From Octopus sinensis (lineage: Eukaryota): a stretch of DNA of 64,000 nt. Position numbers and translations under genes: made by a program. Where the stretch lies: contig NW_021832610.1 of the NCBI RefSeq assembly GCF_006345805.1, positions 1 through 64,000 on the forward strand, given 5' to 3'. The first letter of the stretch is position 1; every line of letters begins with the position of its first letter. Positions 1 to 58,812 of the stretch are shown in pieces. The notes below the pieces were generated by a model that worked only from the letters and a program-made list of their open reading frames with translations, was not told the origin of the DNA and did no database searches.

Positions 1-2047
1 AATTAGTATATATATGCAAATTATGTATATATAAATGCAATTATGTATAGATATATGCAAATTATTTATATATATATATATGCAAATTATGTATATATAT
101 ATGTAAATTATGTATATATATATGCAAATTATGTTATATATATATATATATATGCAAATAGTTACATATATATGCAAATTATGTATTTATTTTTGCAAAT
201 TATGTATATATATATGCAAATTATTTGTATATATATCTGCAACTTATGTATATATATATATGCATTTTATGATATATATATGCTAATTATGTATATATAT
301 ATGCAAACTATGTATAAAATATATTGCAAATTATGTACATATATATGCAAATTATGTACTTATTTTGCAATAATGTATATTATATATGCAAATTATATAT
401 ATAGATATGCAAATTATGTTATATTTATATATATTATATATGTAAATTATGTAGATATATATTGCAAATTATGTATATATAGATGCAAATTATGTATATA
501 TATGCAAATTATGTATATATATATGCAAATTATGTATACATATATATATATATGCAACTTATGTATATATATATGCAAATTATGTATATATATATGCAAA
601 TTATGTATATATATATATGCAAATTATCTATATATATATGCAAATTATGTATATATATATGCCAATTATGCATATATATATATAGAAATATTTTATGCAA
701 ATTATGTATATTTATATGCAAATTATGTATATATATATATATAATTATATATAGCATATTATATATATATATATATGCAAATTATCTATATATATATGCA
801 AATTATGTATATATATGCCAATTATGCATATATATGCAAATTATGTATATATATGCAAATTATGTATATATATGCAAATTATGTATATATATATGCAAAT
901 TATGTTATATATAAGCAAATCATGTATATATATGCTAATTATGTATATATATATATACAAATTTTGTATATATATTTGCAAATTATGTATATTTATATGC
1001 AAATTTTATGTATATATATATAATTATATATAGCACATTATATATATATATATGCAAATTATGTATATATATATGCAAATTATGTATATAGCAAATTATG
1101 TATATATATATGCAACTTATGTATATATATGCCACTTATGTATATATATATACCAATTATGTATATATATATGCAAATTATGTATATATATATGCAAATT
1201 ATTTATATATATATGTAATTCTATATATATATGCAAATTATGTATATATATGCAAATTATGTATATATATGAAAATTATGTATATATATGCAAATATGTA
1301 TATTATATATATATGCAAATTATGTATATATATGCAAATTATGTATATATATGCAAATTATGTATATATATATGCAAATTATGTATATATATGCAAATTA
1401 TGTATATATATATATGCAAGTTATGTATATATAGATGTGCAAATTATGTATATATATATGCAAATTATGTATATATATGCCAATTATGTATATATATATG
1501 CAAATTATGTATATATATATGCAAATTATGTACATACATATGCAAATTATGTACATATATATGCAAATTTTGTATTTATTTTTGCAAATAATGTGTATAT
1601 ATATGAAAATTATGTATATATATATGCAAATTATGTATATATATATATATGCAAGTTATGTATATATATGCAAATTATGTAAATATATATGCAAATTATG
1701 TATATATATATGCAAATTATGTATATATATATGCAGATTATGTATAGATATATGCAAATTATGTATATATATGCAAATTATGTATATATATATGCAAATT
1801 ATGTATATATATATGCAAATTATGTATATATATGCAAATTATGTATATATATATGCAAATTATGTATATATATTTATGCAAATTATGTATAGATATATGC
1901 AAATTATGTATATATATATGCAAATTATGTATATATATATGCAAATTATGTATATATATATACAAATTATGTATATATATATGCAAATTATGTATATATA
2001 TGCAAATTATGTATATATATATGCAAATTATGTATATATATATGTAA
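1..2047 (+). repeat. Satellite A array (ATGCAAATTATG(TA)n, ~20-22 bp unit), forward orientation
   Basis: Continuous tandem TATGCAAATTATGTATATATA with variable TA-tract length; ends at the fixed junction TATGTAAATG|TCAGGAATG. Confidence 0.95.
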
Positions 2048-3744
2048 ATGTCAGGAATGTCATTACCGTCTTTGATCTCTGTCGCCCTCTCTTTGATCTC
2101 TGTCGGCACCGTCTTTGATCTCTGGAATGTCAGGAATGTCTGGAATGTCCGGAATGTCAGGAATGTCTGGAATCAAACACGGTGCCGACAGAGATTAAGC
2201 ACGATGCCGACAGAGATCAAAGACGGTACTGGCATTCCTGACATCCCACACATTCCAGACATTCCGGACATTCCAGACATTCCAGAAATTCCAGACATTC
2301 CTGGCATTCCAGACATTCCTGACATTCCTGAGATCAAAGACTGTGACGACAGAGATCAAAGAGGGTGCCGAAAGAGATCAAAGAGCGTGCCGAAAGAGAT
2401 CAAAGAGCGTTCCGTCTGAGATCAAAGAGAGTGCCGACATAGATCAGCGACGGTGCCGACATATATCAAAGATAGTGCCGACAGAGATCAAAGAGGGTGC
2501 CGACAGAGATCAAAGAGGCGGCCGAAAGTGATCAAAGAGCGTGCCGACAGAGATCAAAGAGAGTGTCGACAGAGATCAAAGACGATGTCGACGGAGATCA
2601 AAGAGGATGCCGAAAGAGATCAAAGAGAGGACCGAATAGATCAAAGAGGGTGCTGACAGAGATCAAAGACGGTGCTGACATTCTTGACTTTCCTGACATT
2701 CCTGAAATTCCAGACATTCATGACATTCCAGACATTCCAGGCATTCATGACATTCCAGAAATTCCAGACATGCATGACATTCCAGACATTCCTGACATTC
2801 CACACATTCGTCACATTCCAGACATTCCTGACATTCCAGATATTCCAGACATTCCGGACATTCCAGACATTCCAGATATTCCAGACATTCCTGACATTCC
2901 AGAGATCAAAGACGGTGCCGACAGAGATCAAACACGGTGCCGACAGAGATCAAAGACGGTACTGACATTCCTGACGTTCCACACATTCCAGACATTCCTG
3001 ACATTCCAGACATTCCTGACATTCCAGATATTCCGGACATTCCAGTTATTCCCGACATTCCTGACATTCCGGAGATCAAAGACGGTGCCGACAGAGATCA
3101 AAGAGGGAGCCGACAGAGATCAAACACGGTGCCAACAGAGATCAAAGACGGTACTGACATTCCTGACATTCCACACATTCCACACATTCCACACATTCCA
3201 CACATTCCAGACATTCGTGACATTCCAGACATTCCAGACATTCCAGATATTCCAGACATTCCTGACATTCCTGACATTCCACACATTCCTGATATTCCTG
3301 ACATTCCTGATATTCCTGACATTCCTGACATTCCAGACATTCATGACATTCCAGACATTCCTGACATTCCAGACATTAAAGATATTCCAGACATTCCTGA
3401 CATTCCAGAGATCAAAAACGGTGCCGACAGAGATCAAAGAGAGGGCCGACAGAGATCAAACACGGTGCCTACAGAAATCAAAGAGGGTAGTGACATTCCT
3501 GACATTCCACACATTCCTGACACACCAGACATTCCTGACATTCCAGACATTCCTGACATTCAAGACATTCCAGATATTCCAGACATTCCTGACATTCCAG
3601 AGATCAAAGACTGTGCCGACAGAGATCAAAGAGAGGGCCGACAGAGATCAAGCACGGTGCTGACAGAGATCAAAGACGGTACTGACATTCCTGACATTCC
3701 ACACATTCCTGACATTCCAGACATTCCTGACATTCCAGACATTC
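2048..3744 (+). repeat. Satellite B block copy 1: alternating runs of 9-bp GACATTCCW and 22-bp GAGATCAAAGACGGTGCCGACA; first ~125 bp (2048-2172) inverted
   Basis: Units read directly; orientation switch at GGAAT|CAAAC near 2172; ends GACATTC|TAAAAATAGTAATAAT. Confidence 0.93.
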
Positions 3745-4730
3745 TAAAAATAGTAATAATAAACTAAAAATAGGACAAATAAACTAAAAATAGAACAGCA
3801 GCTAAAAAGAGTACAAGTAAACTAAAATTAGAACAGCAACAAAAAATAGAACAAATAAACTTAAAATAGCACAGAAACTAAAAATAGAACAGCAACTAAG
3901 AATAGGACAAATAAACTAAAAATAGAACAGCAACTAAAAATAGAACAGCGACTAAAAATAGAACAAATAAACTAAAAATAGAACAGCAAGTAAAATTAGG
4001 ACAAATAAACTTAAAATAGAACAAATAAATTAAAAATAGGACAGCAACTAAAAATAGGACAAATAAACTAAAAATAGGACAAATAAACTCAAAATAGGAC
4101 AAATAAATTAAAAATTGGACAAATAAACTAAAAATAGAACAGCGACTAAAAATAGAACAAATATACTAAAGATAGAACAGCAACTAAAAATAGAACAGCA
4201 ACTAAAAATAGAACAAATAAACTAAAAATAGAACAGCAACTAAAAATATAACAGCAACTAAAAATAGGACAAATAAACTAAAAATAGAACAGCAACTAAA
4301 AATAGGACAAATAAACTAAAAATAGAACAAATAAACTAAAAATAGAACAGCAACTAAAAATAGAACAGCAAGTAAAAATAGAACAGCAACTAAAAATAGA
4401 ACAGCAACTAAAAATAGAACAGCAACTTAAAATAGAATAAATAAACTAAAAATAGAACAGCAACTAAAAATAGAACAAATAAACTAAAAATAGAACAAAT
4501 AAATTTAAAATAGGACAAATAAACTAAAAATAGGACAAATAAACTAAAAATAGGACAAAAAACTAAAAATTGGACAAATAAACTTAAAATAGAACAAATA
4601 AATTGAAAATAGAACAAATAAACTAAAAATAGAACAGCAACTAAAAATAGAACAGCAACTAAAAATAGGACAAATAAACTAAAAATAGAACAGCAACTAA
4701 AAATACAACAAATAAACTAAAGATAGAAGA
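3745..4730 (+). repeat. Satellite C array (18-bp AACTAAAAATAGAACAGC and 20-bp AACTAAAAATAGRACAAATA), truncated copy
   Basis: Tandem units; variant order matches 16898-~17791. Confidence 0.93.
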
Positions 4731-6145
4731 ATATCAGGAATGTCAGGAATATCAGGAATGTGTGGAATGTCAGGAATGTCAGGAATGTCTGGAATATCTG
4801 GAATGTCTGGAATGTCTGGAATGTCACGAATGTCTGGAATGTGTGGAATGTGTGGAATGTGTGGAATGTCAGGAATGTCAGTACCGTCTTATTATTACTA
4901 TTTTTAGAATGTCTGGAATGTCAGGAATGTCTGGAATGTCAGGAATGTGTGGAATGTCAGGAATGTCAGTACCGTCTTTGATCTCTGTTGGCACCGTGTT
5001 TGATCTCTGTCTGCTCCCTCTTTGATCTCTGTCGGCACCGTCTTTGATCTCTGGAATGTCAGGAATGTCGGGAATATCTGGAATGTCCGGAATATCTGGA
5101 ATGTCAGGAATGTCGGAATGTCAGGAATGTCTGGAATGTGTGGAACGTCAGGAATGTCAGTACCGTCTTTGATCTCTGTCGGCACCGTCTTTGATCTCTG
5201 GAATGTCAGGAATGTCTGGAATTCTGGAATGTCTGCAATGTCCGGAATGTCTGGAATATCTGGAATGTCAGGAATGTCTGGAATGTGACGATGTGTGGAA
5301 TGTCAGGAATGTCTGGAATGTCATGCATGTCTGGAATTTCTGGAATGTCATGAATGCCTGGAATGTCTGGAATGTCATGAATGTCTGGAATTTCAGGAAT
5401 GTCAGGAAAGTCAAGAATGTCAGCACCGTCTTTGATCTCTGTCAGCACCCTCTTTGATCTATTCGGTCCTCTCTTTGATCTCTTTCGGCATCCTCTTTGA
5501 TCTCCGTCGACACCGTCTTTGATCTCTGTCGACACTCTCTTTGATCTCTGTCGGCAGGCTCTTTGATCACTTTCGGCACCCTCTTTGATCTCTGTCGGCA
5601 CCCTCTTTGATCTCTGTCGGCACTATCTTTGATATATGTCGGCACCGTCGCTGATCTATGTCGGCACTCTCTTTGATCTCAGACGGAACGCTCTTTGATC
5701 TCTTTCGGCACGCTCTTTGATCTCTTTCGGCACGCTCTTTGATCTCTTTCGGCACCCTCTTTGATCTCTGTCGTCACAGTCTTTGATCTCAGGAATGTCA
5801 GGAATGTCTGGAATGCCTGGAATGTCAGGAATGTCTGTAATGTGTGGAATATGTGGAATGTCTGGAATGTCAGGAATGTCTGGAATTCCAGGAATGTCTG
5901 GAATTTCTGGAATGTCTGGAATGTCCGGAATGTCTGGAATGTGTGGGATGTCAGGAATGCCAGTACCGTCTTTGATCTCTGCCGGCATCGTGCTTAATCT
6001 CTGTCGGCGCCGTGTTTGATTCCAGACATTCCTGACATTCCGGACATTCCAGACATTCCTGACATTCCAGAGATCAAAGACGGTGCCGACAGAGATCAAA
6101 GAGAGGGCGACAGAGATCAAAGACGGTAATGACATTCCTGACATT
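4731..6145 (-). repeat. Satellite B block copy 2, inverted and mosaic
   Basis: GGAATGTC / GATCTCTGTCGGCACCGTCTTT units are the reverse complement of copy 1; 6001-6145 mirrors ~2048-2190. Confidence 0.92.
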
Positions 6146-7006
6146 TACATATTATATACATAATTTGCATATATATATACATAATTTGCATAAATATATA
6201 CATAATTTACATATATATACATAATTTGTATATTATATACATAATTTGCATATATATATACATAATTTGCATATATATATACATAATTTGCATATATCTA
6301 TACATAATTTGCATAAATATATATCCATAATTTGCATATATATATACATAATTTGCATATATATATAATTTGCATATATATATACATAATTTGCATATAT
6401 ATATACATAATTTGCGCATATTATACATAATTTGCATATATCTATACATATTTTGCATATATATATACATAATTTGCATATATATATACATAATTTGCAT
6501 ATATATTTACATAATTTGCATATATATACATAATTTGCATATATATATATATACATAATTTTCCTATATATACACATTATTTGCAAAAATAAATACATAA
6601 TTTGCATATATATGTACATAATTTGCATATGTATGTACATAATTTGCATATATATATACATAATTTGCATATATATATACATAATTGGCATATATATGTA
6701 TAATTTGCATATATATATATACATAATTTGCACATCTATATATACACAATTTGCATATATATATATACATAATTTGCATATATATACATAATTTGCATAT
6801 ATATATACATAATTTGCATATATATACATATTTGCATATATATACATAATTTGCATATATATATATACATAATTTGCATTATATACATAATATGCATATA
6901 TATACATAATTTGCATATATATACATAATTTGCATATATATATAGATTTACATATATATATACATAATTGCATATATATATACATAATTTGCATATATAT
7001 ATACAT
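6146..7006 (-). repeat. Satellite A array, inverted
   Basis: ACATAATTTGCATATATAT units; GCACATCTAT at 6730 is the reverse complement of ATAGATGTGC at 1431. Confidence 0.93.
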
Positions 7007-7007
7007 T

Positions 7008-9977
7008 ATGTATATATATATGCAAATATGTATATATATATATGCAAATATGTATATACATATGCAAATATGTATATATATATGCAAATTATGTATATTA
7101 TATGCAAATTATGATATATATATGCAAATTATGTATATATATATGCAAATATGTATAATATATGCAAATATGTATATATATGCCAGTTATGTATAATATT
7201 ACAAATTATGTATATATATGCAAATTATGTATATATATATGCAAATTATGTATATTATATGCAAATTATGTATATATATATGTTAAATCTCTATATATAT
7301 GCAAATATGTATATATATGCAAATTATGTATATATATGCAAATATGTATATATATATGTAAATTATGTATATATATGCAAATTATGTATATATATGCTAA
7401 TTATGTATATATATATGCAAATTATGTATATATGCAAATTATGTATATATATATGCAAATTATGTATATATAGATATGCAAATTATGTATATATATATAT
7501 GCAAATTATGTATATATATGCCAATTATGTATATATATATGCAAATTATGTATATATATATGCAAATTATGTACATACATATGCAAATTATGTACATATA
7601 TATGCAAATTATGTATTTATTTTTGCAAATAATGTGTATATATATGCAAATTATGTATATATATATGCAAATTATGTATATATATGCAAATTATGTATAT
7701 ATATATATGCAAATTATGTATATATAGATATGCAAATTATGTATATATATATATGCAAATTATGTATATATATGCCAATTATGTATATATATATGTAAAT
7801 TATGTATATATATGCAAATTATGTATATATATGCAAATTATGTATATATATATGCAAATTATGTAAATATATATGCAAATTATGTATATATATATGCAAA
7901 TTATGTATATATATATGCAAATTATGTATAGATATATGCAAATCATGTATATATATGCAAATTATGTATATATATATGCAAATTATGTATATATATATGC
8001 AAATTATGTATATATATATGCAAATTATGTATATATATATATGCAAATTTTGTATATATATATGCAAATTATGTATATTTATATGCAAATTATGTATATA
8101 TATATATATAAAATTATATATAGCAAATTATATATATATATATATGCAAATTATGTATATATATATATATGCAAATTATATATTTATATCAGCAAATTAT
8201 GTGTATATATATGCAAATTATGTATATATATATATGAAAATTATGTATATATATATATGCAAATTATGTATATATATTATATGCAAATTATGTATATATA
8301 TATGCAAATTATGTATATATATATATGCAAATTATGTATATATATATGTAAATATGTATTTATATATGCAAATTATGTATATATATATGCAAATACGTAT
8401 ATATGCAATTATGTATATATATGCAAATTATGAATATTATATGCAAATTATGTATATATATATGAAAATTATGTATATATATATATGCAAATTATGTACT
8501 ATATTGCAAATTATGTATATATATATATGCAAATATGTATATACATAAGCAAATTATGTATATATATATGCAAATAATGTATATATATGCCAATTATGTA
8601 TATATATATACAAATTATGTATTATATATGCAAATTATGTATATATATATGCAAAATATGTACATATATATGCAAATTATGTATATATATATGCAAATAT
8701 CTATATATATATGTAATTCTATATATATATGCAAAGTATGTATATATATGCAAATTATGTATATATATGCAAATTATGTGTATATATATGCAAATTATGT
8801 ATATATATATATATGCAAATTATGTATATATATGCAAATTATGTATATATATATGCAAATTATGTATATATATATATGCAAATTATGTATATATATATGC
8901 AAATTATGTATATATATGCAAATTATGTATATATATATGCAAATTATGAATATATATATGCAAATTATGTATATATAGGCAAATTATGTATATATATATA
9001 TGCAAATTATGTATATATATATGCAAATTATGTATATATATAAGCAAATTATGTATATATATATGCAAATTATGTATATATATATATGCAAATAATGTAT
9101 GTATAAGCCAATTATCTATATATATATAAATTATGTATATATATATGCAATTTATGTATATATATATGCAAATTATGTACATATATATGCAAATTATGTA
9201 TATATATATGCAAATTATGTATTTATATGAAATTATGTATATATATGCAAATTAAGTATATATATGCAAATTATGTATATATTTATGCAAATTATGTATA
9301 TATATGCAAATTTGTATATATATGCAAATGTATATATATGCAATTATGTATATATAATATTCAAATTATGTATATATATATATGCAAATTATGTATATAT
9401 ATATGCAAATTATGTATATAATATGCAAATTATGTATATATATATGCAAATATGTATATATATATGCAAATTATGCATATATATGTGCAAATTATGTATA
9501 TATATTTATGCAAATTATGTATAGATATATGCAAATTATGTATATATATATGCAAATTATGTATATATATATGCAAATTATGTATATATATATGCAAATT
9601 ATGTATATATATGCAAATTATGTATAATATATGCAAATTTGTATATATATATATGCATATAATGTATATATATATATGCAAATTATGTATATATATGCAA
9701 ATTATGTATATATATATATGCAAATTATGTATATATATTTAAATATTTATATATATATTCAAATTATGTATATATCAAATTATGTATATATATATGCAAA
9801 TTATGTATATATGTATATATATGTATATATATATGCAAATTATGTATATATATATATGCAAATTATGTATTTATATATGCAAATTATGTATATATATATA
9901 TTCAAATTATGTATATATATATATGCAAATTATGTATATATATGCAAATTATGTATAAATATATGCAAATTATGTAT
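7008..9977 (+). repeat. Satellite A array, forward
   Basis: Tandem units resume in forward orientation after the hairpin centred at 7007. Confidence 0.93.
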
Positions 9978-10328
9978 AAATAAATAAATAAATACATGAA
10001 TAGAATCTATAAATAGAATCATTAAATAGAATCTATAAATAGAATCTATAAACAGAATCTATAAATAGAATCTATAAATAAATAAATAAATAAATAAATA
10101 AATACATGAATAGAATCTATAAATAGAATCATTAAATAGAATCTATAAAGAGAATCATTAAATAGTATCTATAAATAGAATCTATAAATAAATAAATAAA
10201 TAAATAAATACATGAATAGAATCTATAAATAGAATCTATAAATAGAATCTATAAATAGAATCTATAAATAGAATCTATAAATAGATTCTATAAATAGAAT
10301 CTAAAATAGAATCAATAAATAGAATCTA

Positions 10329-10359
<31 letters not shown>

Positions 10360-10480
10360 ATAGTATCTAAATAGAAATATAAATAGAATCTATAAATAGA
10401 ATCTATAAATAGAATCTATAAATAGAATCTATAATAGAATCTATAAAAAGAATCAATAATAGAATCTATAAAAAAAAAAA
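9978..10480 (+). repeat. Short satellite D island (AATAGAATCTATA + (AAAT)n) ending in an A run
   Basis: 13-bp units and AAAT tracts embedded between A arrays. Confidence 0.9.
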
Positions 10481-13400
10481 ATTATCTATATAAATATGCA
10501 AATATGTATATATATATGCCATTATGCATATATATGCAAATTATGTATATATATATGCAAATTATGTATAGATATATGCAAATTATGTATATATATGCAA
10601 ATTATGTATATATATGTATTATATATGCAAATTATGTATATATATATGCAAATTATGTATTTATATATGCAAATTATGTATATTATATGCAAATTATGTA
10701 TATATATATGCAAATTATGTATGTATATATATGCAAATTATGTATATATATATATGCAAATTATGTATATATATAAGCAAATTATGTATATATATATATG
10801 CAAATAATGTATATATATGCCCATTATGTATATATATATATCACAAATTATGTATATATATATGCAAATTATGTATATATATGAGCAAAATATGTACATA
10901 TATATGCAAATTATGTATATATATATGCAAATTATGTATATATATATGTAAATTCTATATATATATGCAAAGTATGTATATATATGCAAATTATGTATAT
11001 ATATGCAAATTATGTGTATATATATGCATATTATGTATATATATATATATGCAAATTATGTATATATATGCAAATTATGTATATATATATGCAAATTATG
11101 TATATATAAGCAAATTATGTATATATATATATATGCAACTTACGTATATATATATATGACAATTATGTATATATATATGCAAATTATGTATATATATATG
11201 CAAATTATGTATATATATATGCAAATTATGTATATATATGCAAATTATATATATATATATGCAAATTATGAATATATATATGCAAATTATGTATATATAT
11301 GCAAATTATGTATATATATATGCAAATTATGTATATATATATGCAAATTATGTATATATATAAGCAAATTATGTATATATATATGCAAATTATGTATATA
11401 TATATATGCAAAATGTATGTATAAGCCAATTATCTATATATATACAAATTATGTATATATATGCAAATTATGTATATATATATGCAAATTATGTACATAT
11501 ATATGCAAATTATGTATATATATATGCAAATTATGTATATATATGCAAATTATGTATATATATGCAAATTATGTATATATATATGCAAATTATGTATATA
11601 TATGCAAATTATGTATATATATGCAAATTATGTATATATATGCAAATTATGTATGTATATATATATGCAAATTATGTATATATATATATATATGCAAATT
11701 ATGTATATATATATGCAAATTATGTATATATATATGCAAATTATGTATATATATATGCAAATTATGTATATATATATGCAAATTATGTATATATATGCAA
11801 ATTATGTATATATATATGCAAATTATGTGTATATAGGCAAATTATGTATATATATATGCAAATTTGGTATATATATCTGCAACTATATATAAATTATGTA
11901 TATATATCTGCAACTTATGTATATATATATATATGCATTTTATGTATATATATATGCTAATTATGTATATATATATGCAAACTATGTATATATATATGCA
12001 AATTATGTACATATATATGCAAATAATGTACTTATTTTTGCAAATAATGTATATATATATGCAAATTATATATATATATATGCAAATTATGTATATAGAT
12101 ATATATATATATGTAAATTATGTATATATATATGCCAATTATGTATATATAGATGCAAATTATGTATATATATGCAAATTATGTATATATATATGCAAAT
12201 TATGTATACATATATATATATATGCAACTTATGTATATATATATGCAAATTATGTATATATATATGCAAATTATGTATATATATATATGCAAATTATCTA
12301 TATATATATGCAAATTATGTGTATATATATGCCAATTATGCATAATATATATATAAATATTTTATGCAAATTATGTATATTTATATGCAAATTATGTATA
12401 TATATATATATATAATTATATATAGCATATTATATATATATATATGCAAATTATCTATATATATATATATGCAAATTATATGCAAATTATATGCAAATTA
12501 TGAATATATATATGCAAATTATGTATATATATGCAAATTATGTATATATATATGCAAATTATGTATATATATATGCAAATTATGTATATATATAAGCAAA
12601 TTATGTATATATATATGCAAATTACGTATATATATATGCAAATAATGTATGTATAAGCCAATTATCTATATATATATACAAATTATGTATATATATATAT
12701 GCAATTTATGTATATATATATGCAAATTATGTACATATATATGCAAATTATGTATATATATATGCAAATTATGTATTTATATGAAAATTATGTATATATA
12801 TGCAAATTATGTATATATATGCAAATTATGTATATATATATGCAAATTATGTATATATGCAAATTATGTATATATATGCAAATTATGTATATATATATAT
12901 GCAAATTAGATTATATATATATATATGCAAATTATTGTATATATATATGCAAATTATGTATATATATATGCAAATTATGTATATAATATATGCAAATTAT
13001 GTAATTATATATGCAAATTATGCATATATATATGAAAATTATTTTATATATATTTATGCAAATTATGTATAGATATATGCAAATTATGTATATATATATG
13101 CAAATTATGTATATATATATGCAAATTATGTATATATATATGCAAATTATGTATATATAGGCAAATTATGTATATATATATGCAAATTTTGTATATATAT
13201 CTGCAACTATATATAAATATGTATATATATCTGCAACTTATGTATATATATATATATGCATTTTATGTATATATATATGCTAATTATGTATATATATATG
13301 CAAACTATGTATATATATATGCAAATTATGTACATATATATGCAAATTATGTACTTATTTTTTCAAATAATGTATATATATATGCAAATTATATATATAT

Positions 13401-20748: not shown

Positions 20749-20788
20749 AAACCGGTTTAAACTAGTTCAAACCGGTTCAAACTGGTTC
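20749..20788 (+). other. Linker J: four in-phase 10-bp near-palindromes (AAACCGGTTT AAACTAGTTC AAACCGGTTC AAACTGGTTC)
   Basis: Read directly at the C/D boundary; exact reverse complement at 37982-38021. Confidence 0.9.
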
Positions 20789-21563: not shown

Positions 21564-21602
<39 letters not shown>

Positions 21603-24026: not shown

Positions 24027-24061
<35 letters not shown>

Positions 24062-28683: not shown

Positions 28684-28909
28684 ATTTATTTATTTATTTA
28701 TTTATTTATAGATTCTATTTATAGATACTATTTAATGATTCTATTTATAGATACTATTTATAGATTCTATTTATAGATTCTATTTATTTATTTATTTATA
28801 GATTCCATTTTAATATTTATTTATTTATTTATAGATTCTATTTATTTATTTATTTATTTATAGATTCTATTTATAGATTCTATTTATAGATTCTATTTAT
28901 AGATTCTAT

Positions 28910-28948
<39 letters not shown>

Positions 28949-36365: not shown

Positions 36366-36400
<35 letters not shown>

Positions 36401-37981: not shown

Positions 37982-38021
37982 GAACCAGTTTGAACCGGTT
38001 TGAACTAGTTTAAACCGGTTT
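37982..38021 (-). other. Linker J, inverted copy
   Basis: GAACCAGTTT GAACCGGTTT GAACTAGTTT AAACCGGTTT. Confidence 0.9.
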
Positions 38022-47000: not shown

Positions 47001-50000
47001 TTAGTTTATTTGTCCCATTTTAAATTTATTTGTTCTATTTTTAGTTTATTGGTTCTATTTTTAGTTGCTGTTCTATTTTTAGTTTATTTGTTCAATTTTT
47101 AGTTGCTGTTCTATTTTTAATTGCTGTTCTATTTTTGTTGCTGTTCTATTTTTACTTGCTGTTCTATTTTTAGTTGCTGTTCTATTTTTAGTTTATTTTG
47201 TTCTATTTTTAGTTTATTTGTCCTATTTTTAGTTGCTGTTCTATTTTTAGTTTATTTGTCCTATTTTTAGTTGCTGTTATATTTTTAGTTGCTGTTCAAT
47301 TTTTAGTTGCTGTTCTATTTTCAGTTGCTGTTCTATTTTTAGTTGCTGTTCTATTTTTAGTTTTATTTGTTCTATTTTTAGTTTATTTGTCCTATTTTTA
47401 GTTGCTGTTATATTTTTAGTTGCTGTTCTATTTTTAGTTTATTTGTTCTATTTTTAGTTTATTTGTCCTATTTTTAGTTGCTGTTCTTTTTTTAGTTTAT
47501 TTGTCCTATTTTTAGTTGCTGTTATATTTTTAGTTGCTGTTCTATTTTTAGTTTATTTGTTCTATTTTTAGTTGCTGTTCTATTTTTAGTTGCTATTCTA
47601 TTTTTAGTTTTTTGTCCTATTTTTAGTTGCTGTTCTATTTTTAGTTTATTTGTTCCATTTTTAGTCGCTGTTCTATTTTTAGTTTATTTGTCCAATTTTT
47701 AGTTTATTTGTTCTATTTTGAGTTTATTTGTCCTATTTTTAGTTTATTTGTCCTATTTTAAATTTATTTGTTCTATTTTTAGTTTATTTGTTCTATTTTT
47801 AGTTGCTGTTCTATTTTTAGTTTATTTGCTCTATTTTTAGTTGCTGTTCTATTTTTACTTGCTGTTCTATTTTTAGTTGCTGTTCTATTTTTACTTGCTG
47901 TTCTATTTTTAGTTGCTGTTCTATTTTTAGTTTATTTGTTCTATTTTTAGTTTATTTGTCCTATTTTTAGTTGCTGTTCTATTTTTAGTTTATTTGTCCT
48001 ATTTTTAGTTGCTGTTATATTTTTAGTTGCTGTTCTATTTTTAGTTTATTTGTTCTATTTTTAGTTGCTGTTCTATTTTTAGTTGCTGTTCTATCTTTAG
48101 TTTATTTGTTGTATTTTTAGTTGCTGTTCTATTTTTAGTTTATTTGTCCTATTTTTAGTTGCTGCTGCTCTATTTTTATTGCTGTTCTATTTTTAGTTTA
48201 TTTGTTCTATTTTTAGTCGCTGTTCTATTTTTAGTTTATTTGTCCAATTTTTAGTTTATTTGTACTATTTTGAGTTTATTTGTCCTATTTTTAGTTTATT
48301 TGTCCTATTTTTAATTTATTTGTTCTATTTTTAGTTTATTGGTTCTATTTTTAGTTGCTGTTCTATTTTTAGTTTATTTGTTCTATTTTTAGTTGCTGTT
48401 CTATTTTTAATTGCTGTTCTATTTTTAGTTGCTGTTCTATTTTTACTTGCTGTTCTATTTTTAGTTGCTGTTCTATTTTTAGTTTATTTGTTCTATTTTT
48501 AGTTTTTTTGTTGTCCTATTTTTAGTTGCTGTTCTATTTTTAGTTTATTTGTCCTATTTTTAGTTGCTGTTATATTTTTAGTTGCTGTTCTATTTTTAGT
48601 TGCTGTTCTATTTTCAGTTGCTGTTCTATTTTTAGTTGCTGTTCTATTTTTAGTTTATTTGTTCTATTTTTAGTTTATTTGTCCTATTTTTAGTTGCTGT
48701 TCTATTTTTAGTTTATTTGTCCTATTTTTAGTTGCTGTTATATTTTTAGTTGCTGTTCTATTTTTAGTTTATTTGTTCTAATTTTAGTTGCTGTTCTATT
48801 TTTAGTTGCTGTTCTATTTTTAGTTTATTTGTCCTATTTTTAGTTGCTGTTCTATTTTTAGTTTATTTGTCCAATTTTTAGTTTTTTTGTCCTATTTTGA
48901 GTTTATTTGTCCTATTTTTAGTTTATTTGTCCTATTTTCAATTTATTTGTTCTATTTTTAGTTTATTTGTCCAATTTTTAGTTTTTTTGTCCTATTTTGA
49001 GTTTATTTGTACTATTTTTAGTATATTTGTCCTATTTTAAATTTATTTGTTCTATTTTCATTTTATTTGTTCTATTTTTAGTTGCTCTTCTATTTTTAGT
49101 TTATTTGTTCTATTTTTAGTTGCTGTTCTATTTTTAATTGCTGTTCTATTTTTAGTTGCTGTTCTATTTTTACTTGCTGTTCTATTTTTAGTTGCTGTTC
49201 TATTTTTAGTTTATTTGTTCTATTTTTAGTTTATTTGTCCTATTTTTAGTTGCTGTTCTATTTTTAGTTTATTTGTCCTATTTTTAGTTGCTGTTCTATT
49301 TTTAGTTTATTTGTTCTAATTTTAGTCGCTGTTCTATTTTTAGTTTATTTGTCCAATTTTTAGTTTATTTGTCCTATTTTGAGTTTATTTGTCCTATTTT
49401 TAGTTTATTTGTCCTATTTTAAATTTATTTGTTCTATTTTTAGTTTATTTGTTCTATTTTTAGTTGCTGTTCTATTTTTAGTTTATTTGTTCTATTTTTA
49501 GTTGCTGTTCTATTTTTACTTGCTGTTCTATTTTTAGTTGCTGTTCTATTTTTACTTGCTGTTCTATTTTTAGTTGCTGTTCTAATTTTAGTTTATTTGT
49601 TCTATTTTTAGTTTATTTGTCCTATTTTTAGTTGCTGTTCTATTTTTAGTTTATTTGTCCTATTTTTAGTTGTTGTTCTATTTTTAGTTGCTGTTCTATT
49701 TTTAGTTTATTTGTTCTATTTTTAGTCGCTGTTCTATTTTTAGTTTATTTGTCCAATTTTTAGTTTATTTGTACTATTTTGAGTTTATTTGTCCTATTTT
49801 TAGTTTATTTGTCCTATTTTTAATTTATTTGTTCTATTTTTAGTTTATTGGTTCTATTTTTAGTTGCTGTTCTATTTTTAGTTTATTTGTTCTAATTTTA
49901 GTTGCTGTTCTATTTTTAATTGCTGTTCTATTTTTAGTTGCTGTTCTATTTTTACTTGCTGTTCTATTTGTAGTTGCTGTTCTATTTTTAGTTTATTTGT

Positions 50001-53000
50001 TCTATTTTTAGTTTATTTGTCCTATTTTTAGTTGCTGTTCTATTTTTAGTTTATTTGTCCTATTTTTAGTTGCTGTTCTATTTTTAGTTTATTTGCCCAA
50101 TTTTTAGTATTTTGTCCTATTTTGAGTTTATTTGTCCTATTTTTAGTTTATTTGTCCTATTTTCAATTTATTTGTTCTATTTTTAGTTTATTTGTTCCAT
50201 TTTTAGTGGCTGTTCTATTTTTAGTTTATTTGTCCAATTTTTAGTTTATTTGTCCTATTTTGAGTTTATTTGTCCTATTTTTTAGTTTATTTGTCCTATT
50301 TTAAATTTATTTGTTCTATTTTTAGTTTATTTGTTCTATTTTTAGTTGCTGTTCTATTTTTAGTTTATTTCTATTTTTAGTTGCTGTTCTATTTTTACTT
50401 GCTGTTCTATTTTTATTTGCTGTTCTATTTTTACTTGCTGTTCTATTTTTAGTTGCTGTTCTATTTTCAGATTATTTGTTCTATTTTTAGTTTATTTGTC
50501 CTATTTTTAGTTGCTGTTCTATTTTTAGTTTATTTGTCCTATTTTTAGTTGCTGTTACATTTTTAGTTGCTGTTCTATTTTTAGTTTATTTGTTCTATTT
50601 TTAGTTGCTGTTCTATTTTTAGTTGCTGTTCTATCTTTAGTTTATTTGTTGTATTTTTAGTTGCTGTTCTATTCTTAGTTTATTTGTCCTATTTTTAGCT
50701 GCTGCTCTATTTTTAGTTGCTGTTCTATTTTTAGTTTATTTGTTCTATTTTTAGTCGCTGTTCTATTTTTAGTTTATTTGTCCAATTTTTAGTTTATTGG
50801 TACTATTTTGAGTTTATTTGTCCTATTTTTAGTTTATTTGTCCTATTTAATTTATTTGTTCTATTTTAGTTTATTGGTTCTATTTTTTAGTTCTGTTCTA
50901 TTTTTAGTTTATTTGTTCTATTTTTAGTTGCTGTTCTATTTTAATTGCTGTTCTATTTTTAGTTGCTGTTCTATTTTTAGTTGCTGTTTATATTTTTAGT
51001 TGCTGTTCTATTTTTAGTTTATTTGTTCTATTTTAGTTGCTGTTCTATTTTTAGTTGCTGTTCTATCTTTAGTTTATTTGTTTATTTTAGTTGCTGTTCT
51101 ATTCTTAGTTTATTTGTCCTATTTTTAGCTGCTGCTCTATTTTTAGTTGCTGTTCTATTTTTAGTTTATTTGTTCTACTTTTAGTCGCTGTTCTATTTTT
51201 AGTTTATTTGTCCATTTTTAGTTTTATTTGTACTATTTTGAGTTTATTTGTCCTATTTTTAGTTTATTTGTCCATTTAAATTTATTTGTTCTATTTTTAG
51301 TTTATTGGTTCTATTTTTAGTTGCTGTTCTATTTTTAGTTTATTTGTTCTATTTTTAGTTGCTGTTCTATTTTTAATTGCTGTTCTATTTTTAGTTGCTG
51401 TTCTATTTTTACTTGCTGTTCTATTTTTAGTTGCTGTTCTATTTTTAGTTTATTTGTTCTATTTTTAGTTTATTTGTCCTATTTTTAGTTGCTGTTCTAT
51501 TTTTAGTTTATTTGTCCTATTTTTAGTTGCTGTTATATTTTTAGTTGCTGTTCTATTTTTAGTTGCTGTTCTATTTTCAGTTGCTGTTCTATATTTAGTT
51601 GCTGTTCTATTTTTAGTTTTATTTGTTCTATTTTTAGTTTATTTGTCCTATTTTTAGTTGCTGTTCTATTTTTAGTTTATTTGTCCTATTTTTAGTTGCT
51701 GTTATATTTTTAGTTGCTGTTCTATTTTTAGTTTATTTGTTCTAATTTTAGTTGCTGTTCTATTTTTAGTTGCTGTTCTATTTTTAGTTTATTTGTCCTA
51801 TTTTTAGTTGCTGTTCTATTTTTAGTTTATTTGTCCAATTTTTGGTTTTTTTGTCCTATTTTGAGTTTATTTGTCCTATTTTTAGTTTATTTGTCCTATT
51901 TTCAATTTATTTGTTCTATTTTTAGTTTATTTGTCCAATTTTTAGTTTTTTGTCCTATTTTGAGTTTATTTGTACTATTTTTAGTTTATTTGTCCTATTT
52001 TAAATTTATTTGTTCTATTTTTAGTTTATTTGTTCTATTTTTAGTTGCTGTTCTATTTTTAGTTTATTTGTTCTATTTTTAGTTGCTGTTCTATTTTTAT
52101 TGCTGTTCTATTTTTAGTTGCTGTTCTATTTTTACTTGCTGTTCTATTTTTAGTTGCTGTTCTATTTTTAGTTTATTTGTTCTATTTTTAGTTTATTTGT
52201 CCTATTTTTAGTTGCTGTTCTATTTTTAGTTTATTTGTTCTATTTTTAGTTGCTGTTCTATTTTTAGTTTTTTTTGTCCTATTTTTAGTTGCTGTTCTAT
52301 TTTTAGTTTATTTGTTCTATTTTTAGTCGCTGTTCTATTTTTAGTTTATTTGTCCAATTTTTAGTTTATTTGTCCTATTTTGAGTTTATTTGTCCTATTT
52401 TTAGTTTATTTGTCCTATTTTAAATTTATTTGTTCTATTTTTAGTTTATTTGTTCTATTTTTAGTTGCTGTTCTATTTTTAGTTTATTTGTTCTATTTTT
52501 AGTTGCTGTTCTATTTTTACTTGCTGTTCTATTTTTAGTTGCTGTTCTATTTTTACTTGCTGTTCTATTTTTAGTTGCTGTTCTAATTTTAGTTTATTTG
52601 TTCTATTTTTAGTTTATTTGTCCTATTTTTAGTTGCTGTTCTATTTTTAGTTGCTGCTCTATTTTTAGTTGCTGTTCTATTTTTAGTTTATTTGTTCTAT
52701 TTTTAGTCGCTGTTCTATTTTTAGTTTATTTGTCCAATTTTTAGTTTATTTGTACGATTTTGAGTTTATTTGTCCTATTTTTAGTTTATTTGTCCTATTT
52801 TTAATTTATTTGTTCTATTTTTAGTTTATTTGTTCTATTTTTAGTTAATTTGTCCTATTTTTAGTTGCTGTTCTATTTTTAGTTTATTTGTCCTATTTTT
52901 AGTTGCTGTTCTATTTTTAGTTTATTTGTCCAATTTTTAGTTTTTTGTCCTATTTTGAGTTTATTTATCCTATTGTTAGTTTATTTGTCCTATTTTCAAT

Positions 53001-56000
53001 TTATTTGTTCTATTTTTAGTTTATTTGTCCAATTTTTAGTTTTTTGTCCTATTTTGAGTTTATTTGTACTATTTTTAGTTTATTTGTCCTATTTTAAATT
53101 TATTTGTTCTATTTTTAGTTTATTTGTTCTATTTTTAGTTGCTGTTCTATTTTTAGTTTATTTGTTCTATTTTTAGTTGCTGTTCTATTTTTAATTGCTG
53201 TTCTATTTTTAGTTGCTGTTCTATTTTTACTTGCTGTTCTATTTTTAGTTGCTGTTCTATTTTTAGTTTATTTGTTCTATTTTTAGTTTATTTGTCCTAT
53301 TTTTAGTTGCTGTTCTATTTTTAGTTTATTTGTCCTATTTTTAGTTGCTGTTATATTTTTAGTTGCTGTTATATTTTTAGTTGCTGTTCTATTTTTAGTT
53401 TATTTGTTCTATTTTTAGTTGCTGTTCTATTTTTAGTTGCTGTTCTATTTTTAGTTTTTTTGTCCTATTTTTATTTGCTGTTCTATTTTTAGTTTATTTG
53501 TTCTATTTTTAGTCGCTGTTCTATTTTTAGTTTATTTGTCCAATTTTTAGTTTATTTGTCCTATTTTGAGTTTATTTGTCCTATTTTTAGTTTATTTGTC
53601 CTATTTTAAATTTATTTGTTCTATTTTTAGTTTATTTGTTCTATTTTTAGTTGCTGTTCTATTTTTAGTTTATTTGTTCTATTTTTAGTTGCTGTTCTAT
53701 TTTTACTTGCTGTTCTATTTTTAGTTGCTGTTCTATTTTTACTTGCTGTTCTATTTTTAGTTGCTGTTCTAATTTTAGTTTATTTGTTCTATTTTTAGTT
53801 TATTTGTCCTATTTTTAGTTGCTGTTCTATTTTTAGTTTATTTGTCCTATTTTTAGTTGTTGTTATATTTTTAGTTGCTGTTCTATTTTTAGTTTATTTG
53901 TTCTATTTTTAGTTGCTGTTCTATTTTTAGTTGCTGTTCTATCTTTAGTTTATTTGTTGTATTTTTAGTTGCTGTTCTATTTTTAGTTTATTTGTCCTAT
54001 TTTTAGTTGCTGTTCTATTTTTAGTTTATTTGTTCTATTTTTAGTCGCTGTTCTATTTTTAGTTTATTTGTCCAATTTTTAGTTTATTTGTACTATTTTG
54101 AGTTTATTTGTCCTATTTTTAGTTTATTTGTCCTATTTTTAGTTTATTTGTCCTATTTTTAGTTGCTGTTCTATTTTTAGTTTATTTGTCCTATTTTCAG
54201 TTGCTGTTATATTTTTAGTTGCTGTTCTATTTTTAGTTGCTGTTCTAATTTTAGTTGCTGTTCTATTTTCAGTTGCTGTTCTATTTTTGTTGCTGTTCTA
54301 TTTTTAGTTTATTTTGTTCTTTTTTAGTTGCTGTTCTATTTTTAGTTTATTTGTTCTATTTTTAGTTGCTGTTCTATTTTTACTTGCTGTTCTATTTTTA
54401 GTTGCTGTTCTATTTTTACTTGCTGTTCTATTTTTAGTTGCTGTTCTAATTTTAGTTTATTTGTTCTATTTTTAGTTTATTTGTCCTATTTTTAGTTGCT
54501 GTTCTATTTTTAGTTGCTGCTCTATTTTTAGTTGCTGTTCTATTTTTAGTTTATTTGTTCTATTTTTGTTGCTGTTCTATTTTTAGTTTATTTGTCCAAT
54601 TTTTAGTTTATTTGTACGATTTTGAGTTTATTTGTCCTATTTTTAGTTTATTTGTCCTATTTTTAATTTATTTGTTCTATTTTTAGTTTATGTGTTCTAT
54701 TTTTAGTTTATTTGTCCTATTTTTAGTTGCTGTTCTATTTTTAGTTTATTTGTCCTATTTTTAGTTGCTGTTCTATTTTTAGTTTATTTGTCCAATTTTT
54801 AGTTTTTTTGTCCTATTTTGAGTTTATTTGTCCTATTTTTAGTTTATTTGTCCTATTTTCAATTTATTTGTTCTATTTTTAGTTTATTTGTCCAATTTTT
54901 AGTTTTTTTGTCCTATTTTGAGTTTATTTGTACTATTTTTAGTTTATTTGTCCTATTTTAAATTTATTTGTTCTATTTTTAGTTTATTTGTTCTATTTTT
55001 AGTTGCTGTTCTATTTTTAGTTTATTTGTTCTATTTTTAGTTGCTGTTCTATTTTTAATTGCTGTTCTATTTTTAGTTGCTGTTCTATTTTTACTTGCTG
55101 TTCTATTTTTAGTTGCTGTTCTATTTTTAGTTTATTTGTTCTATTTTTAGTTTATTTGTCCTATTTTTAGTTGCTGTTCTATTTTTAGTTTATTTGTCCT
55201 ATTTTTAGTTGCTGTTATATTTTATGTTGCTGTTATATTTTTAGTTGCTGTTCTATTTTTAGTTTATTTGTTCTATTTTTAGTTGCTGTTCTATTTTTAG
55301 TTGCTGTTCTATTTTTAGTTTTTTTTGTCCTATTTTTAGTTGCTGTTCTATTTTTAGTTTATTTGTTCTATTTTTAGTCGCTGTTCTATTTTTAGTTTAT
55401 TTGTCCAATTTTTAGTTTATTTGCCCTATTTTGAGTTTATTTGTCCTATTTTTAGTTTATTTGTCCTATTTTAAATTTATTTGTTTTATTTTTAGTTTAT
55501 TTGTTCTATTTTTAGTTGCTGTTCTATTTTTAGTTTATTTGTTCTATTTTTAGTTGCTGTTCTATTTTTACTTGCTGTTATATTTTTAGTTGCTGTTCTA
55601 TTTTTACTTGCTGTTCTATTTTTAGTTGCTGTTCTAATTTTAGTTTATTTGTTCTATTTTTAGTTTATTTTTCCTATTTTTAGTTGCTGTTCTATTTTTA
55701 CTTTATTTGTCCTATTTTTAGTTGTTGTTCTATTTTTAGTTGCTGTTCTATTTTTAGTTTATTTGTTCTATTTTTAGTTGCTGTTCTATTTTTAGTTGCT
55801 GTTCTATCTTTAGTTTATTTGTTGTATTTTTAGTTGCTGTTCTATTTTTAGTTTATTTGTCCTATTTTTAGTTGCTGTTCTATTTTTAGTTTATTTGTTC
55901 TACTTTTAGTCGCTGTTCTATTTTTAGTTTATTTGTCCAATTTTTAGTTTATTTGTACTATTTTGAGTTTATTTGTCCTATTTTTAGTTTATTTGTTCTA

Positions 56001-57283
56001 TTTTTAGTTTATTTGTCCTATTTTTAGTTGCTCTTCTATTTTTAGTTTATTTGTCCTATTTTTAGTTGCTGTTATATTTTTAGTTGCTGTTCTATTTTTA
56101 GTTGCTGTTCTAATTTTAGTTGCTGTTCTATTTTCAGTTGCTGTTCTATTTTTGTTGCTGTTCTATTTTTAGTTTATTTGTTCTATTTTTAGTTTATTTG
56201 TCCTATTTTTAGTTGCTGTACTATTTTTAGTTTATTTGTCCTATTTTTAGTTGCTGTTATACTTTTAGTTGCTGTTCTATTTTTAGTTTATTTGTTCTAA
56301 TTTTAGTTGCTGTTCTATTTTTAGTTGCTGTTCTATTTTTAGTTTATTTGTCCTATTTTTAGTTGCTGTTCTATTATTAGTTTATTTGTCCAATTTTTAG
56401 TTTTTTTGTCCTATTTTGAGTTTATTTGTCCTATTTTTAGTTTATTTGTCCTATTTTCAATTTATTTGTTCTATTTTTAGTTTATTTGTCTAATTTTTAG
56501 TTTTTTGTCCTATTTTGAGTTTATTTGTCCTATTTTTTAGTTTATTTGTCCTATTTTAAATTTATTTGTTCTATTTTTAGTTTATTTGTACTATTTTTAG
56601 TTGCTGTTCTATTTTTAGTTTATTTGTTCTATTTTTAGTTGCTGTTCTATTTTTACTTGCTGTTCTATTTTTAGTTGCTGGTCTATTTTTACTTGCTGTT
56701 CTATTTTTAGTTGCTGTTCTATTTTTAGTTTATTTGTTCTATTTTTAGTTTATTCGTCCTATTTTTAGTTGCTGTTATATTTTTAGTTGCTGTTCTATTT
56801 TTAGTTTATTTGTTCTATTTTTAGTTGCTGTTCTATTTTTAGTTGCTGTTCTATCTTTAGTTTATTTGTTCTATTTTTAGTCGCTGTTCTATTTTTAGTT
56901 TATTTGCCCAATTTTTAATTGATTTGTCCTATTTTGAGTTTATTTGTCCTATTTTTAGTTTATTTGTCCTATTTTTAATTTATTTGTTCTATTTTAAGTT
57001 TATTTGTCCTAATTTTACTTGCTGTTCTATTTTTAGTTTATTTGTTCTATTTTTAGTCGCTGTTCTATTTTTAGTTTATTTGTTCCATTTTTAGTTGCTG
57101 TTCTATTTTTAGTTTATTTGTTCTATTCTTAGTTGCTGTTCTATTTTTAGTTGCTGTGCTATTTTAAGTTTATTTGTTCTATTTTTTGTTGCTGTTCTAA
57201 TTTTAGTTTACTTGTACTATTTTTAGCTGCTGTTCTATTTTTAGTTTATTTGTCCTATTTTTAGTTTATTATTACTATTTTTA
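38022..57283 (-). repeat. Satellite C array, inverted (~19.3 kb), with higher-order repeats
   Basis: TTTTTAGTTGCTGTTCTA / TTTTTAGTTTATTTGTYCTA units; rare variants recur at 1862-1865 bp and 4264 bp spacing. Confidence 0.95.
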
Positions 57284-58812
57284 GAATGTCTGGAATGTCA
57301 GGAATGTCTGGAATGTCAGGAATGTGTGGAATGTCAGGAATGTCAGTACCGTCTTTGATCTCTGTCAGCACCGTGCTTGATGTCTGTCGGCCCTCTCTTT
57401 GATCTCTGTCGGCACAGTCTTTGATCTCTGGAATGTCAGGAATATCTGGAATGTCTTGAATGTCAGGAATGTCTGGAATGTCAGGAATGTCTGGTGTGTC
57501 AGGAATGTGTGGAATGTCAGGAATGTCACTACCCTCTTTGATTTCTGTAGGCACCGTGTTTGATCTCTGTCGGCCCTCTCTTTGATCTCTGTCGGCACCG
57601 TTTTTGATCTCTGGAATGTCAGGAATGTCTGGAATATCTTTAATGTCTGGAATGTCAGGAATGTCTGGAATGTCATGAATGTCTGGAATGTCAGGAATGT
57701 CAGGAATATCAGGAATGTCAGGAATATCAGGAATGTGTGGAATGTCAGGAATGTCAGGAATGTCTGGAATATCTGGAATGTCTGGAATGTCTGGAATGTC
57801 ACGAATGTCTGGAATGTGTGGAATGTGTGGAATGTGTGGAATGTCAGGAATGTCAGTACCGTCTTTGATCTCTGTTGGCACCGTGTTTGATCTCTGTCTG
57901 CTCCCTCTTTGATCTCTGTCGGCACCGTCTTTGATCTCTGGATTGTCAGGAATGTCGGGAATATCTGGAATGTCCGGAATATCTGGAATGTCAGGAATGT
58001 CTGGAATGTCAGGAATGTCTGGAATGTGTGGAACGTCAGGAATGTCAGTACCGTCTTTGATCTCTGTCGGCACCGTCTTTGATCTCTGGAATGTCAGGAA
58101 TGTCTGGAATATCTGGAATGTCTGGAATGTCCGGAATGTCTGGAATATCTGGAATGTCAGGAATGTCTTGAATGTGACGAATGTGTGGAATGTCAGGAAT
58201 GTCTGGAATGTCATGCATGTCTGGAATTTCTGGAATGTCATGAATGCCTGGAATGTCTGGAATGTCATGAATGTCTGGAATTTCAGGAATGTCAGGAAAG
58301 TCAAGAATGTCAGCACCGTCTTTGATCTCTGTCAGCACCCTCTTTGATCTATTCGGTCCTCTCTTTGATCTCTTTCGGCATCCTCTTTGATCTCCGTCGA
58401 CACCGTCTTTGATCTCTGTCGACACTCTCTTTGATCTCTGTCGGCACGCTCTTTGATCACTTTCGGCACCCTCTTTGATCTCTGTCGGCACCCTCTTTGA
58501 TCTCTGTCGGCACTATCTTCGATATATGTCGGCACCGTCGCTGATCTATGTCGGCACTCTCTTTGATCTCAGACGGAACGCTCTTTGATCTCTTTCGGCA
58601 CGCTCTTTGATCTCTTTCGGCACCCTCTTTGATCTCTGTCGTCACAGTCTTTGATCTCAGGAATGTCAGGAATGTCTGGAATGCCTGGAATGTCAGGAAT
58701 GTCTGTAATGTGTGGAATATGTGGAATGTCTGGAATGTCAGGAATGTCTGGAATGCCAGGAATGTCTGGAATTTCTGGAATGTCTGGAATATCAGGAATG
58801 TCGGCACCCTCT
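57284..58812 (-). repeat. Satellite B block copy 4, inverted, joined to non-satellite DNA
   Basis: Same C|B junction (ATTATTACTATTTTTAG|AATGTC); ends TCGGCACCCTCT then non-repetitive sequence. Confidence 0.92.

Follow-up and report, generated by a model that had tools for sequence, protein, structure and literature searches.

The closest described counterpart of the locus reported here lies on the short arms of the human acrocentric chromosomes, where mosaic-inversion satellite arrays are found together with symmetric inverted segmental duplications (HSat1/HSat3/BSat/ACRO; telomere-to-telomere assembly T2T-CHM13, PMC9186530), and where the BSat and HSat arrays were described as having a 'mosaic inversion structure' (PMC9186530). 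We analysed a comparable arrangement in Octopus sinensis, on positions 1 to 64,000 (forward strand) of contig NW_021832610.1, assembly GCF_006345805.1; these 64,000 nucleotides are hereafter called the window. Positions 1-58812 of the window are almost wholly tandem repeats, in which four repeat types (A, B, C and D) and a 38-bp linker (J) recur in both orientations. As in the human arrays, unrelated satellite families stand in a fixed order, in both orientations and with identical boundaries; copies are highly similar, array sizes are variable, and orientation switches inside single arrays. Unlike the human arrays, which extend over hundreds of kb to Mb, the octopus domain measures tens of kb, and its units and organism are unrelated. 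The human arrays were moreover validated by reads and fluorescence in situ hybridization, whereas the window is seen as assembled sequence.

Two other systems are relevant. Fork stalling and template switching (FoSTeS), microhomology-mediated break-induced replication (MMBIR) and intrastrand annealing are all defined by how the event arises. The window resembles their fold-back products in its single-copy spacers of 0.1-1.4 kb, its 2-3 nt overlaps, a serial jump at 4729-4990 and orientation flips in (TA)n; it differs in that satellite DNA served as the substrate, and in that the events form nests of which parts were later copied again in direct orientation. The second system is artefactual: palindromic chimeras appear in long reads after phi29 amplification, through missed SMRTbell adapters or as nanopore fold-back reads (PMC6218980, PMC13265396). 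Here too one sees several inverted repeats of one sequence within tens of kb, and such structures can persist in assemblies. Read chimeras are, however, symmetric and nested (X rcX X rcX, where rc is the reverse complement), with arms coming from one molecule, whereas the arms in the window are asymmetric and separated by spacers, and are accompanied by shared unit-level indels and direct duplications, with no adapter.

By these sequence features, the window would be classed as a composite satellite domain with mosaic inversions, the repeat units and the organism being new. Descriptions of satellite DNA and of centromere-type regions in cephalopods are essentially lacking: we found nothing in the literature on cephalopod or octopus satellite DNA matching these repeats, or on these repeat units, and the repeat-annotation paper for Octopus vulgaris does not mention satellites. 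Our favoured explanation, to which we assign a probability of roughly 60%, is that of a real non-coding composite-satellite domain, which would have grown by stepwise segmental duplication and in which local errors of consensus and array length are possible. The domain is probably heterochromatin, and no function beyond that of satellite or heterochromatin DNA is implied.

Copies of the composite cassette

Tandem repeats were called with Tandem Repeats Finder over the 64-kb window, which contains no Ns, and orientation was assigned by 9-mer tiling and runs of monomer orientation. The A unit is 21 bp long (TATATATATGCAAATTATGTA; about 19 kb in total, 15% G+C, period 21 with up to 435 copies). 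C alternates units of 18 and 20 bp (CTAAAAATAGAACAGCAA / CTAAAAATAGAACAAATAAA; about 24 kb, period 18/20/38, some 1000 copies), and D has a 13-bp unit (AATCTATAAATAG; about 9 kb, period 13, some 280 copies) with (ATAA)n expansions. Matches within these three kinds of array were 75 to 83%, and all three form the kb-scale head-to-tail arrays typical of satellites. B is a complex element of 1.5-1.8 kb, composed of runs of a 22-bp unit (GAGATCAAAGAGGGTGCCGACA, 16-17 copies per element) and a 9-bp unit (GACATTCCA), with a higher-order repeat of about 190 bp at its C-side end. J, between C and D, is what remains of a 10-bp repeat (CAAACCGGTT), in 3.5 copies.

Copies were compared by a 40-mer dot plot and by pairwise global alignments. 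The plot, which the first-pass annotation of this sequence had suggested as a check, showed long colinear diagonals, both direct (1874-4545 = 14951-17702; 23917-29618 = 29659-35387) and inverted (19753-24512 = rc 39004-34299; 1220-3181 = rc 6946-4942). We estimated the expectation of a chance exact 40-mer match in 64 kb at about 1e-15. The aligned pairs were as follows.

1217-4545 and 14300-17702: direct, across A/B/C, 1.3% substitutions
1220-3181 and 6946-4942: inverted, across A/B, 1.2% substitutions
2303-4403 and 58685-56625: inverted, across B/C, 1.3% substitutions
15347-17427 and 58790-56756: inverted, across B/C, 1.5% substitutions
19753-24512 and 39004-34299: inverted, across C/J/D/A, 2.5% substitutions
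23917-29618 and 29659-35387: direct, across D/mixed A/D, 1.5% substitutions

Identity was 97.5 to 98.9% for direct and inverted copies alike, and all six pairs also differed by 1-bp indels and by whole-unit indels (9, 18, 20, 22 and 72 bp). Because multi-kb segments that cross satellite boundaries are colinear at this level of identity, the blocks were not expanded independently. Each boundary listed in the first-pass annotation also recurred with the same sequence, at most 2 bp from where it had been placed. In oriented 90-nt stretches from both strands, near-identical sequences were found at three A/B boundaries (2047, 6146, 15124), three B/C boundaries (3744, 16897, 57283), two C/J/D boundaries (about 20770, and 38000) and four D/A boundaries (24350, 28683, 30040, 34461); B itself is assembled four times. 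Given the identity of the junctions and the order of the blocks, chance cannot explain the structure. These comparisons support the duplication of a composite cassette A-B-C-J-D-A as a whole, in both orientations.

It had been proposed that the 59 kb are one zig-zag, a single template having been copied forward and backward. The first half of this proposal stands, since the blocks did not expand independently and the composite cassette was copied whole in both orientations. The single zig-zag does not: it is contradicted by the joint of a direct 5.74-kb tandem duplication at 29622-29624 and by the direct duplication 1217-4545 / 14300-17702. Furthermore, two C arrays of 3.9 and 19.3 kb lie between identical edges and have interiors that are not colinear, and the outer end of the fourth B copy (B4) is unlike that of B1 to B3. 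This last difference implies at least two parental B contexts; B4 enters unique DNA about 220 bp short of the point at which the other three copies meet A.

Some variants were common to subsets of copies. A 22-bp gap is found in B2 and B4 and not in B1 and B3, and a jump in C is common to the truncated C copy (C1) and the short C array and missing from the long one. A patch in D is common to the junction copies at 28683 and 34461 and absent from that at 24350, as predicted if the palindrome formed first and the tandem duplication second. Two simpler schemes were considered and rejected: the short C array is no simple deletion derivative of the long one, its interior being a mosaic of common variants, and no clean duplication tree could be drawn from pairwise distances, which are star-like and dominated by copy-specific noise.

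The order and orientations of the blocks given in the first-pass annotation were reproduced exactly by the three methods (Tandem Repeats Finder, 9-mer tiling, monomer runs). The features of the window are the following.

1-2047, + strand: A satellite, cut by the window edge
2047-3744, + strand: B1, with 22-bp/9-bp sub-repeats and the higher-order repeat of about 190 bp on the C side
2048-2173, - strand: inverted B piece of 126 bp at the A/B boundary, in all three A/B copies
3744-4728, + strand: C1, truncated after 985 bp; with 3315-3744 it forms the spacer of turn T1
4729-6146, - strand: B2, inverted and truncated, starting at joint T1
6149-7006, - strand: A satellite, inverted; 4730-6937 = rc 3314-1229 at 98.9%
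7007-7226, + strand: turn T2 and its spacer of about 220 bp, carrying GCAAATATG variant monomers
7227-9983, + strand: A satellite; 7227-8078 = rc 7006-6154 at 97.4%
9984-10472, + strand: D piece of 490 bp inside the A array, matching D near 23576-23803
10473-15123, + strand: A satellite, with internal direct segmental repeats of about 1.2-2.3 kb
15124-16897, + strand: B3, the noisiest B copy
16897-20751, + strand: short C array, 3.85 kb, both edges conserved
20752-20789, + strand: J, 38-bp relic of the 10-bp repeat
20790-24349, + strand: D satellite, 13-bp unit
24350-28683, mixed strands: mixed A block 1 (A- 24350-25203, A+ to 27735, A- to 28361, A+ to 28683)
28684-29624, - strand: D satellite, inverted, ending at the joint of the 5.74-kb direct tandem duplication
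29622-30039, + strand: D satellite, starting the second copy of that duplication
30040-34461, mixed strands: mixed A block 2, a direct copy of block 1 with 1.5% substitutions and monomer-sized indels
34462-37980, - strand: D satellite, inverted; with J- and the end of C- it is the right arm of a large imperfect palindrome
37981-38018, - strand: J, inverted
38019-57284, - strand: long C array, 19.3 kb, with its own internal direct repeats of 1.9 and 4.3 kb
57284-58812, - strand: B4, inverted, the cleanest B copy, exiting straight into non-satellite DNA
58813-64000, no strand: flank with copies of short interspersed nuclear elements and other transposable elements (SINE/TE), a mariner remnant and microsatellites, without genes found

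The list resolves into two modules. The larger, 15124-58812, is an imperfect palindrome (B C J D+ [mixed A] D- J- C- B-) whose centre is tandemly duplicated (5.74 kb). The smaller, 1-8078, is a nested set, A B [C] B- A- [spacer] A, and the A arrays with the 490-bp D insert connect the two. The segment 7227-8078 is a fourth copy of the B-proximal part of A, yet no B follows it. The outer junctions of mixed A block 1 are reverse complements of each other, and the orientation flips of the two mixed blocks are paired (25203/30676, 27735/33361, 28361/34261). Since A at 1-2047 is cut by the window edge, the domain may extend leftward. A 12-nt poly(A) at 10473-10484 lies exactly at the right joint of the D insert, and could be filler, a slippage product or a retro-type tail.

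The 59-kb block carries no genes and is non-coding. Its open reading frames (ORFs) are translated repeats without any Pfam match above cut-off, no replication or transposition protein was found in the 59 kb, and an Rfam scan of the window gave no RNA family match. A protein search with an A-satellite ORF returned no homologue, an exact look-up of ten window ORFs in a protein collection found none of them, and neither the A nor the C unit was matched in metagenome scans. ARAGORN called six 'tRNAs' of 93-99 nt within the A array (1362-1458, 1639-1731, 6712-6808, 9867-9963, 31136-31234, 33030-33124), which we take as false positives of AT-rich repeats; Rfam has no tRNA there.

Turn points and joints

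Turns were mapped by the best local alignment of the reverse-complemented left flank against the right flank. None of them is a symmetric palindrome with zero spacer; spacers range from about 0.1 to 1.4 kb. At T1 (4728/4729) the arms 4730-6937 and 3314-1229 are 2.1 kb long and 98.9% identical, around a spacer of 1415 bp made of the end of B1 and C1. At base level, C+ runs into the middle part of B-, the two sharing 2 nt (GA), and GATAGAAGAATATCAGGAATG is an example of a 31-mer spanning the junction. About 150 bp further on, near 4880, a second short jump adds 17 bp of C- and the start of B, so that 4729-4990 forms a small serial (triple) jump. At T2 (about 7034) the arms 6154-7006 and 7227-8078 are 97.4% identical, with a spacer of about 220 bp, and the orientation flips between 6984 and 7084, in (TA)n. 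Within this spacer, at 7020-7090, a variant shorter by 1 bp, GCAAATATG, is repeated in three A monomers in a row; it is absent from the arms. Spacers are about 530-550 bp at T4/T8 (27735, 33361) and about 1240 bp at T3 (25203). All orientation flips inside A fall in self-complementary (TA)n, and the D/A joint lies within ATACAT(G)AAT, a motif common to a D variant and the A monomer.

The turn from D- to D+ (T6) had to be rejected as a fold-back. Similarity to the left parent extends to 29624, and similarity to the right parent starts at 29622 (the equivalent of 23880), leaving a 3-nt TAT overlap: this is the direct joint of the 5.74-kb tandem duplication, the duplicated segment beginning with D+ and ending with D-. 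Both joints resolved to the base (T1 and 29622-29624) thus display microhomology, of 2 and 3 nt respectively.

The A/B boundary itself, in which the 126-bp inverted B piece is lodged, contains a further fold-back, with arms at 2084-2173 and 2279-2368 (90 nt, 90% complementary) and a 105-nt spacer, and it is found in all three A/B copies. As this fold-back is only 90% identical and lies inside the cassette, inverted duplication at the locus must predate the recent copies, and it cannot be a read artefact. T1, T2, T4/T8 and the A/B boundary all present the configuration that characterizes fold-back inversion, namely an inverted duplication with a short single-copy spacer between its arms.

Origin of the domain

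The arrangement could be accounted for by some 8-10 segmental duplications, direct and inverted, of an already composite cassette (unique DNA-B-C-J-D-A). The joints most likely go back to FoSTeS/MMBIR-like events, in which replication switches template or a break is repaired through microhomology, or else to intrastrand annealing at a break, and self-complementary tracts would favour inverted outcomes. Segments already rearranged would then have been duplicated again, the centre of the palindrome being tandemly duplicated at a later stage (5.74 kb), and subsequent unequal exchange within arrays may have changed their lengths, as for C. The topology and the joints are directly seen; from them we infer the process by which the joints arose, which a finished sequence cannot show. 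A real origin is favoured by the older 90-nt fold-back, by the variants found in subsets of copies and by the unequal C arrays with conserved edges.

Several observations weigh against this explanation. Private 1-bp indels are very uneven among the B copies (12 in B3, 3 in B2, none in B1 or B4; B3 against its sister B1, P about 0.0005 in our own two-sided binomial test), and private substitutions number 18 in B3 and 3 in B4. Off-by-one monomer lengths are patchy, from 0 to 23% per kb: the patches rich in 1-bp deletions or such monomers (14300-17900, 6149-7149, 29660-30340, 34040-34900, 41000-46000) adjoin others with none, which suggests uneven consensus quality in the assembly or, for C at 41-46 kb, an older and more diverged core. 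Transitions are not in excess of transversions between copies, and pairwise copy distances are star-like rather than tree-like. Five joints (4729/4880, about 7034, 9984, 10472, 29622) occur once in the window, so that each could rest on one chimeric molecule. Chimeras generated by phi29, too, take the form of fold-backs with spacers and short microhomology, and the structure is seen in one assembled copy of the locus. The uneven 1-bp deletion noise indicates a consensus of draft quality that varies along the window, as in assemblies from Oxford Nanopore Technologies (ONT) R9 or continuous long reads; the O. vulgaris reference, for instance, was built from 27x ONT R9.4.1 data and polished with linked reads (PMC10700109).

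The caveat in the first-pass annotation that amplification chimeras or fold-back reads can give such concatemers was justified. Chimeric or fold-back molecules, or the mis-joining of fewer real copies, might have produced some or most turns, and the true locus would then be simpler, such as a single palindrome or a single cassette running in one direction. The uneven private deletions and patchy monomer lengths, the five singleton joints and the star-like differences, with B4, beside unique DNA, close to the consensus, would all fit; moreover, long reads with multiple palindromes and assembled inverted duplications have been documented after amplification (PMC6218980). However, the arms are offset by 0.2-1.4 kb at every turn, without nested doublings of the form X rcX X rcX, and direct duplications are also present. 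No match to the ONT and SMRTbell adapter sequences tried was found within 3-7 errors. An octopus is not known to need whole-genome amplification, which also counts against an artefact. Whole-unit indels (9, 18, 20, 22 and 72 bp) separate the copies, some of them common to subsets; the interiors of the short and long C arrays differ, as do the outer ends of B1-B3 and B4; and the old fold-back at 90% identity is already within the cassette. A mis-join, finally, can shuffle real copies and cannot invent inverted junction sequences. On this balance we regard an artefactual origin as possible but doubtful. If it applied, the locus would mark a mis-assembled region, with a useful signature in its singleton inverted joints combined with an uneven noise of 1-bp deletions.

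If the composite-satellite domain is real, it contributes four new satellite families of octopods, with joints at base level. As in the acrocentric and pericentromeric DNA of humans, composite arrays would then be shown to spread in units of entire cassettes, through inverted and direct duplications mediated by microhomology. Real or artefactual, the block has no coding or regulatory content that changes the interpretation of neighbouring genes.

A bolder proposal would make of the locus an in vivo recurrent palindrome generator, in which the self-complementary (TA)n core of the A monomer and D tracts of the TTTATAAA type would repeatedly prime fold-back synthesis, spawning inverted copies of the locus and its neighbours at several scales and ages (arms of 90 nt at 90% identity and of 0.6-4.7 kb at 95-99%). 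We consider this proposal improbable; were it true, long hairpin transcripts might feed heterochromatin silencing by small RNAs.

Breakage-fusion-bridge cycles, that is, repeated sister-chromatid fusion after a terminal break, would produce fold-backs in which the satellites are merely carried along. Fold-back inversions with short spacers are indeed present, and the X-spacer-rcX-X pattern at 1-8078 resembles successive fold-backs. Nevertheless, simple tandem duplication in direct orientation accounts for the 5.74-kb event, neither the D insertion in A (9984-10472) nor the triple jump at 4729-4990 is a fold-back, array sizes differ five-fold between the arms of the palindrome, and the window contains no telomeric repeat and no sign of a terminal position. 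This makes such cycles a very unlikely source of the structure. A mobile or autonomous element, be it a rolling-hairpin replicon or a satellite-carrying transposon inserted in adjacent copies, could explain the constant internal boundaries of the cassette and the small hairpin-like inverted repeat at the A/B end, but is largely refuted by the lack in the window of any replication protein or hairpin replicon (against the rolling-hairpin replication named in the first-pass annotation), by a 59-kb block devoid of transposition proteins and Rfam matches and with ORFs that are translated repeats, by a sole transposase trace that is an unrelated mariner remnant in the flank, by the absence of visible defined termini or target-site duplications, and by copies truncated at different internal points.

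The flank and a locus of Octopus vulgaris

A protein search with the translated B frame returned low-complexity matches and one O. vulgaris 'hypothetical predicted protein' encoded on chromosome OX597818.1. The corresponding O. vulgaris locus (L001) holds, at its positions 2797-11363, an 8.5-kb array in which a 22-bp unit alternates with the 10-bp CAAACCGGTT. The 22-bp unit GAGATCAAAGACGGTGCCGACA has 251 matches there at 0-3 mismatches, compared to 0 expected. Both units are known from the window, the first from B and the second from J. The combination differs: the 22-bp unit alternates with the 9-bp GACATTCCA in the 1.5-1.8 kb element of the window, and with the 10-bp unit in L001. L001, the one O. 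vulgaris locus compared, lacks the A, C, D and 9-bp units. L001 also differs in being unidirectional, with one strand only among the matches listed.

The protein that led to this locus (P0002, 'Hypothetical predicted protein', L001 10001-10753) corresponds to the 22-bp satellite read as protein, every three units encoding a 22-residue repeat, and is probably an annotation artefact.

The flank of the window (58813-64000) consists of interspersed repeats, and no gene was found in it. At least four SINE/TE copies (60311-60690, 61771-62014, 62104-62184, 63067-63545) are common to this flank and to L001 12088-18515, an arbitrary O. vulgaris locus, at 75 to 97% identity; they provide the chief argument for an octopod origin of the window. 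Together with the 22-bp and 10-bp units found in O. vulgaris, these shared flank repeats point to octopod heterochromatin-like DNA.

Other features of the flank are minor. A remnant of a mariner/Mos1-type transposase lies at 62362-62980 on the + strand; it retains an N-terminal HTH_48 domain (E = 3e-11), has two in-frame stops, a deleted catalytic core and a frameshifted C-terminal end, and its best database relatives (proteins from the Joint Genome Institute, JGI) are only 64-76% identical. The motif GCGAAGACTTGTTGAGGC(A/G)AGTGAAATCGAAATCGAAATCAA occurs twice, at 58935-58985 and 59497-59590, the second copy being inside a short palindromic structure, similar to a miniature inverted-repeat transposable element and flanked by CATTGTTGTCATATTGA / TCAATATGACAACAATA. 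Microsatellites of the (TA)n / (TATA-C/G) type occupy 61490-61560 and 63540-64000, and the window ends within an AT dinucleotide run (63782-64000).

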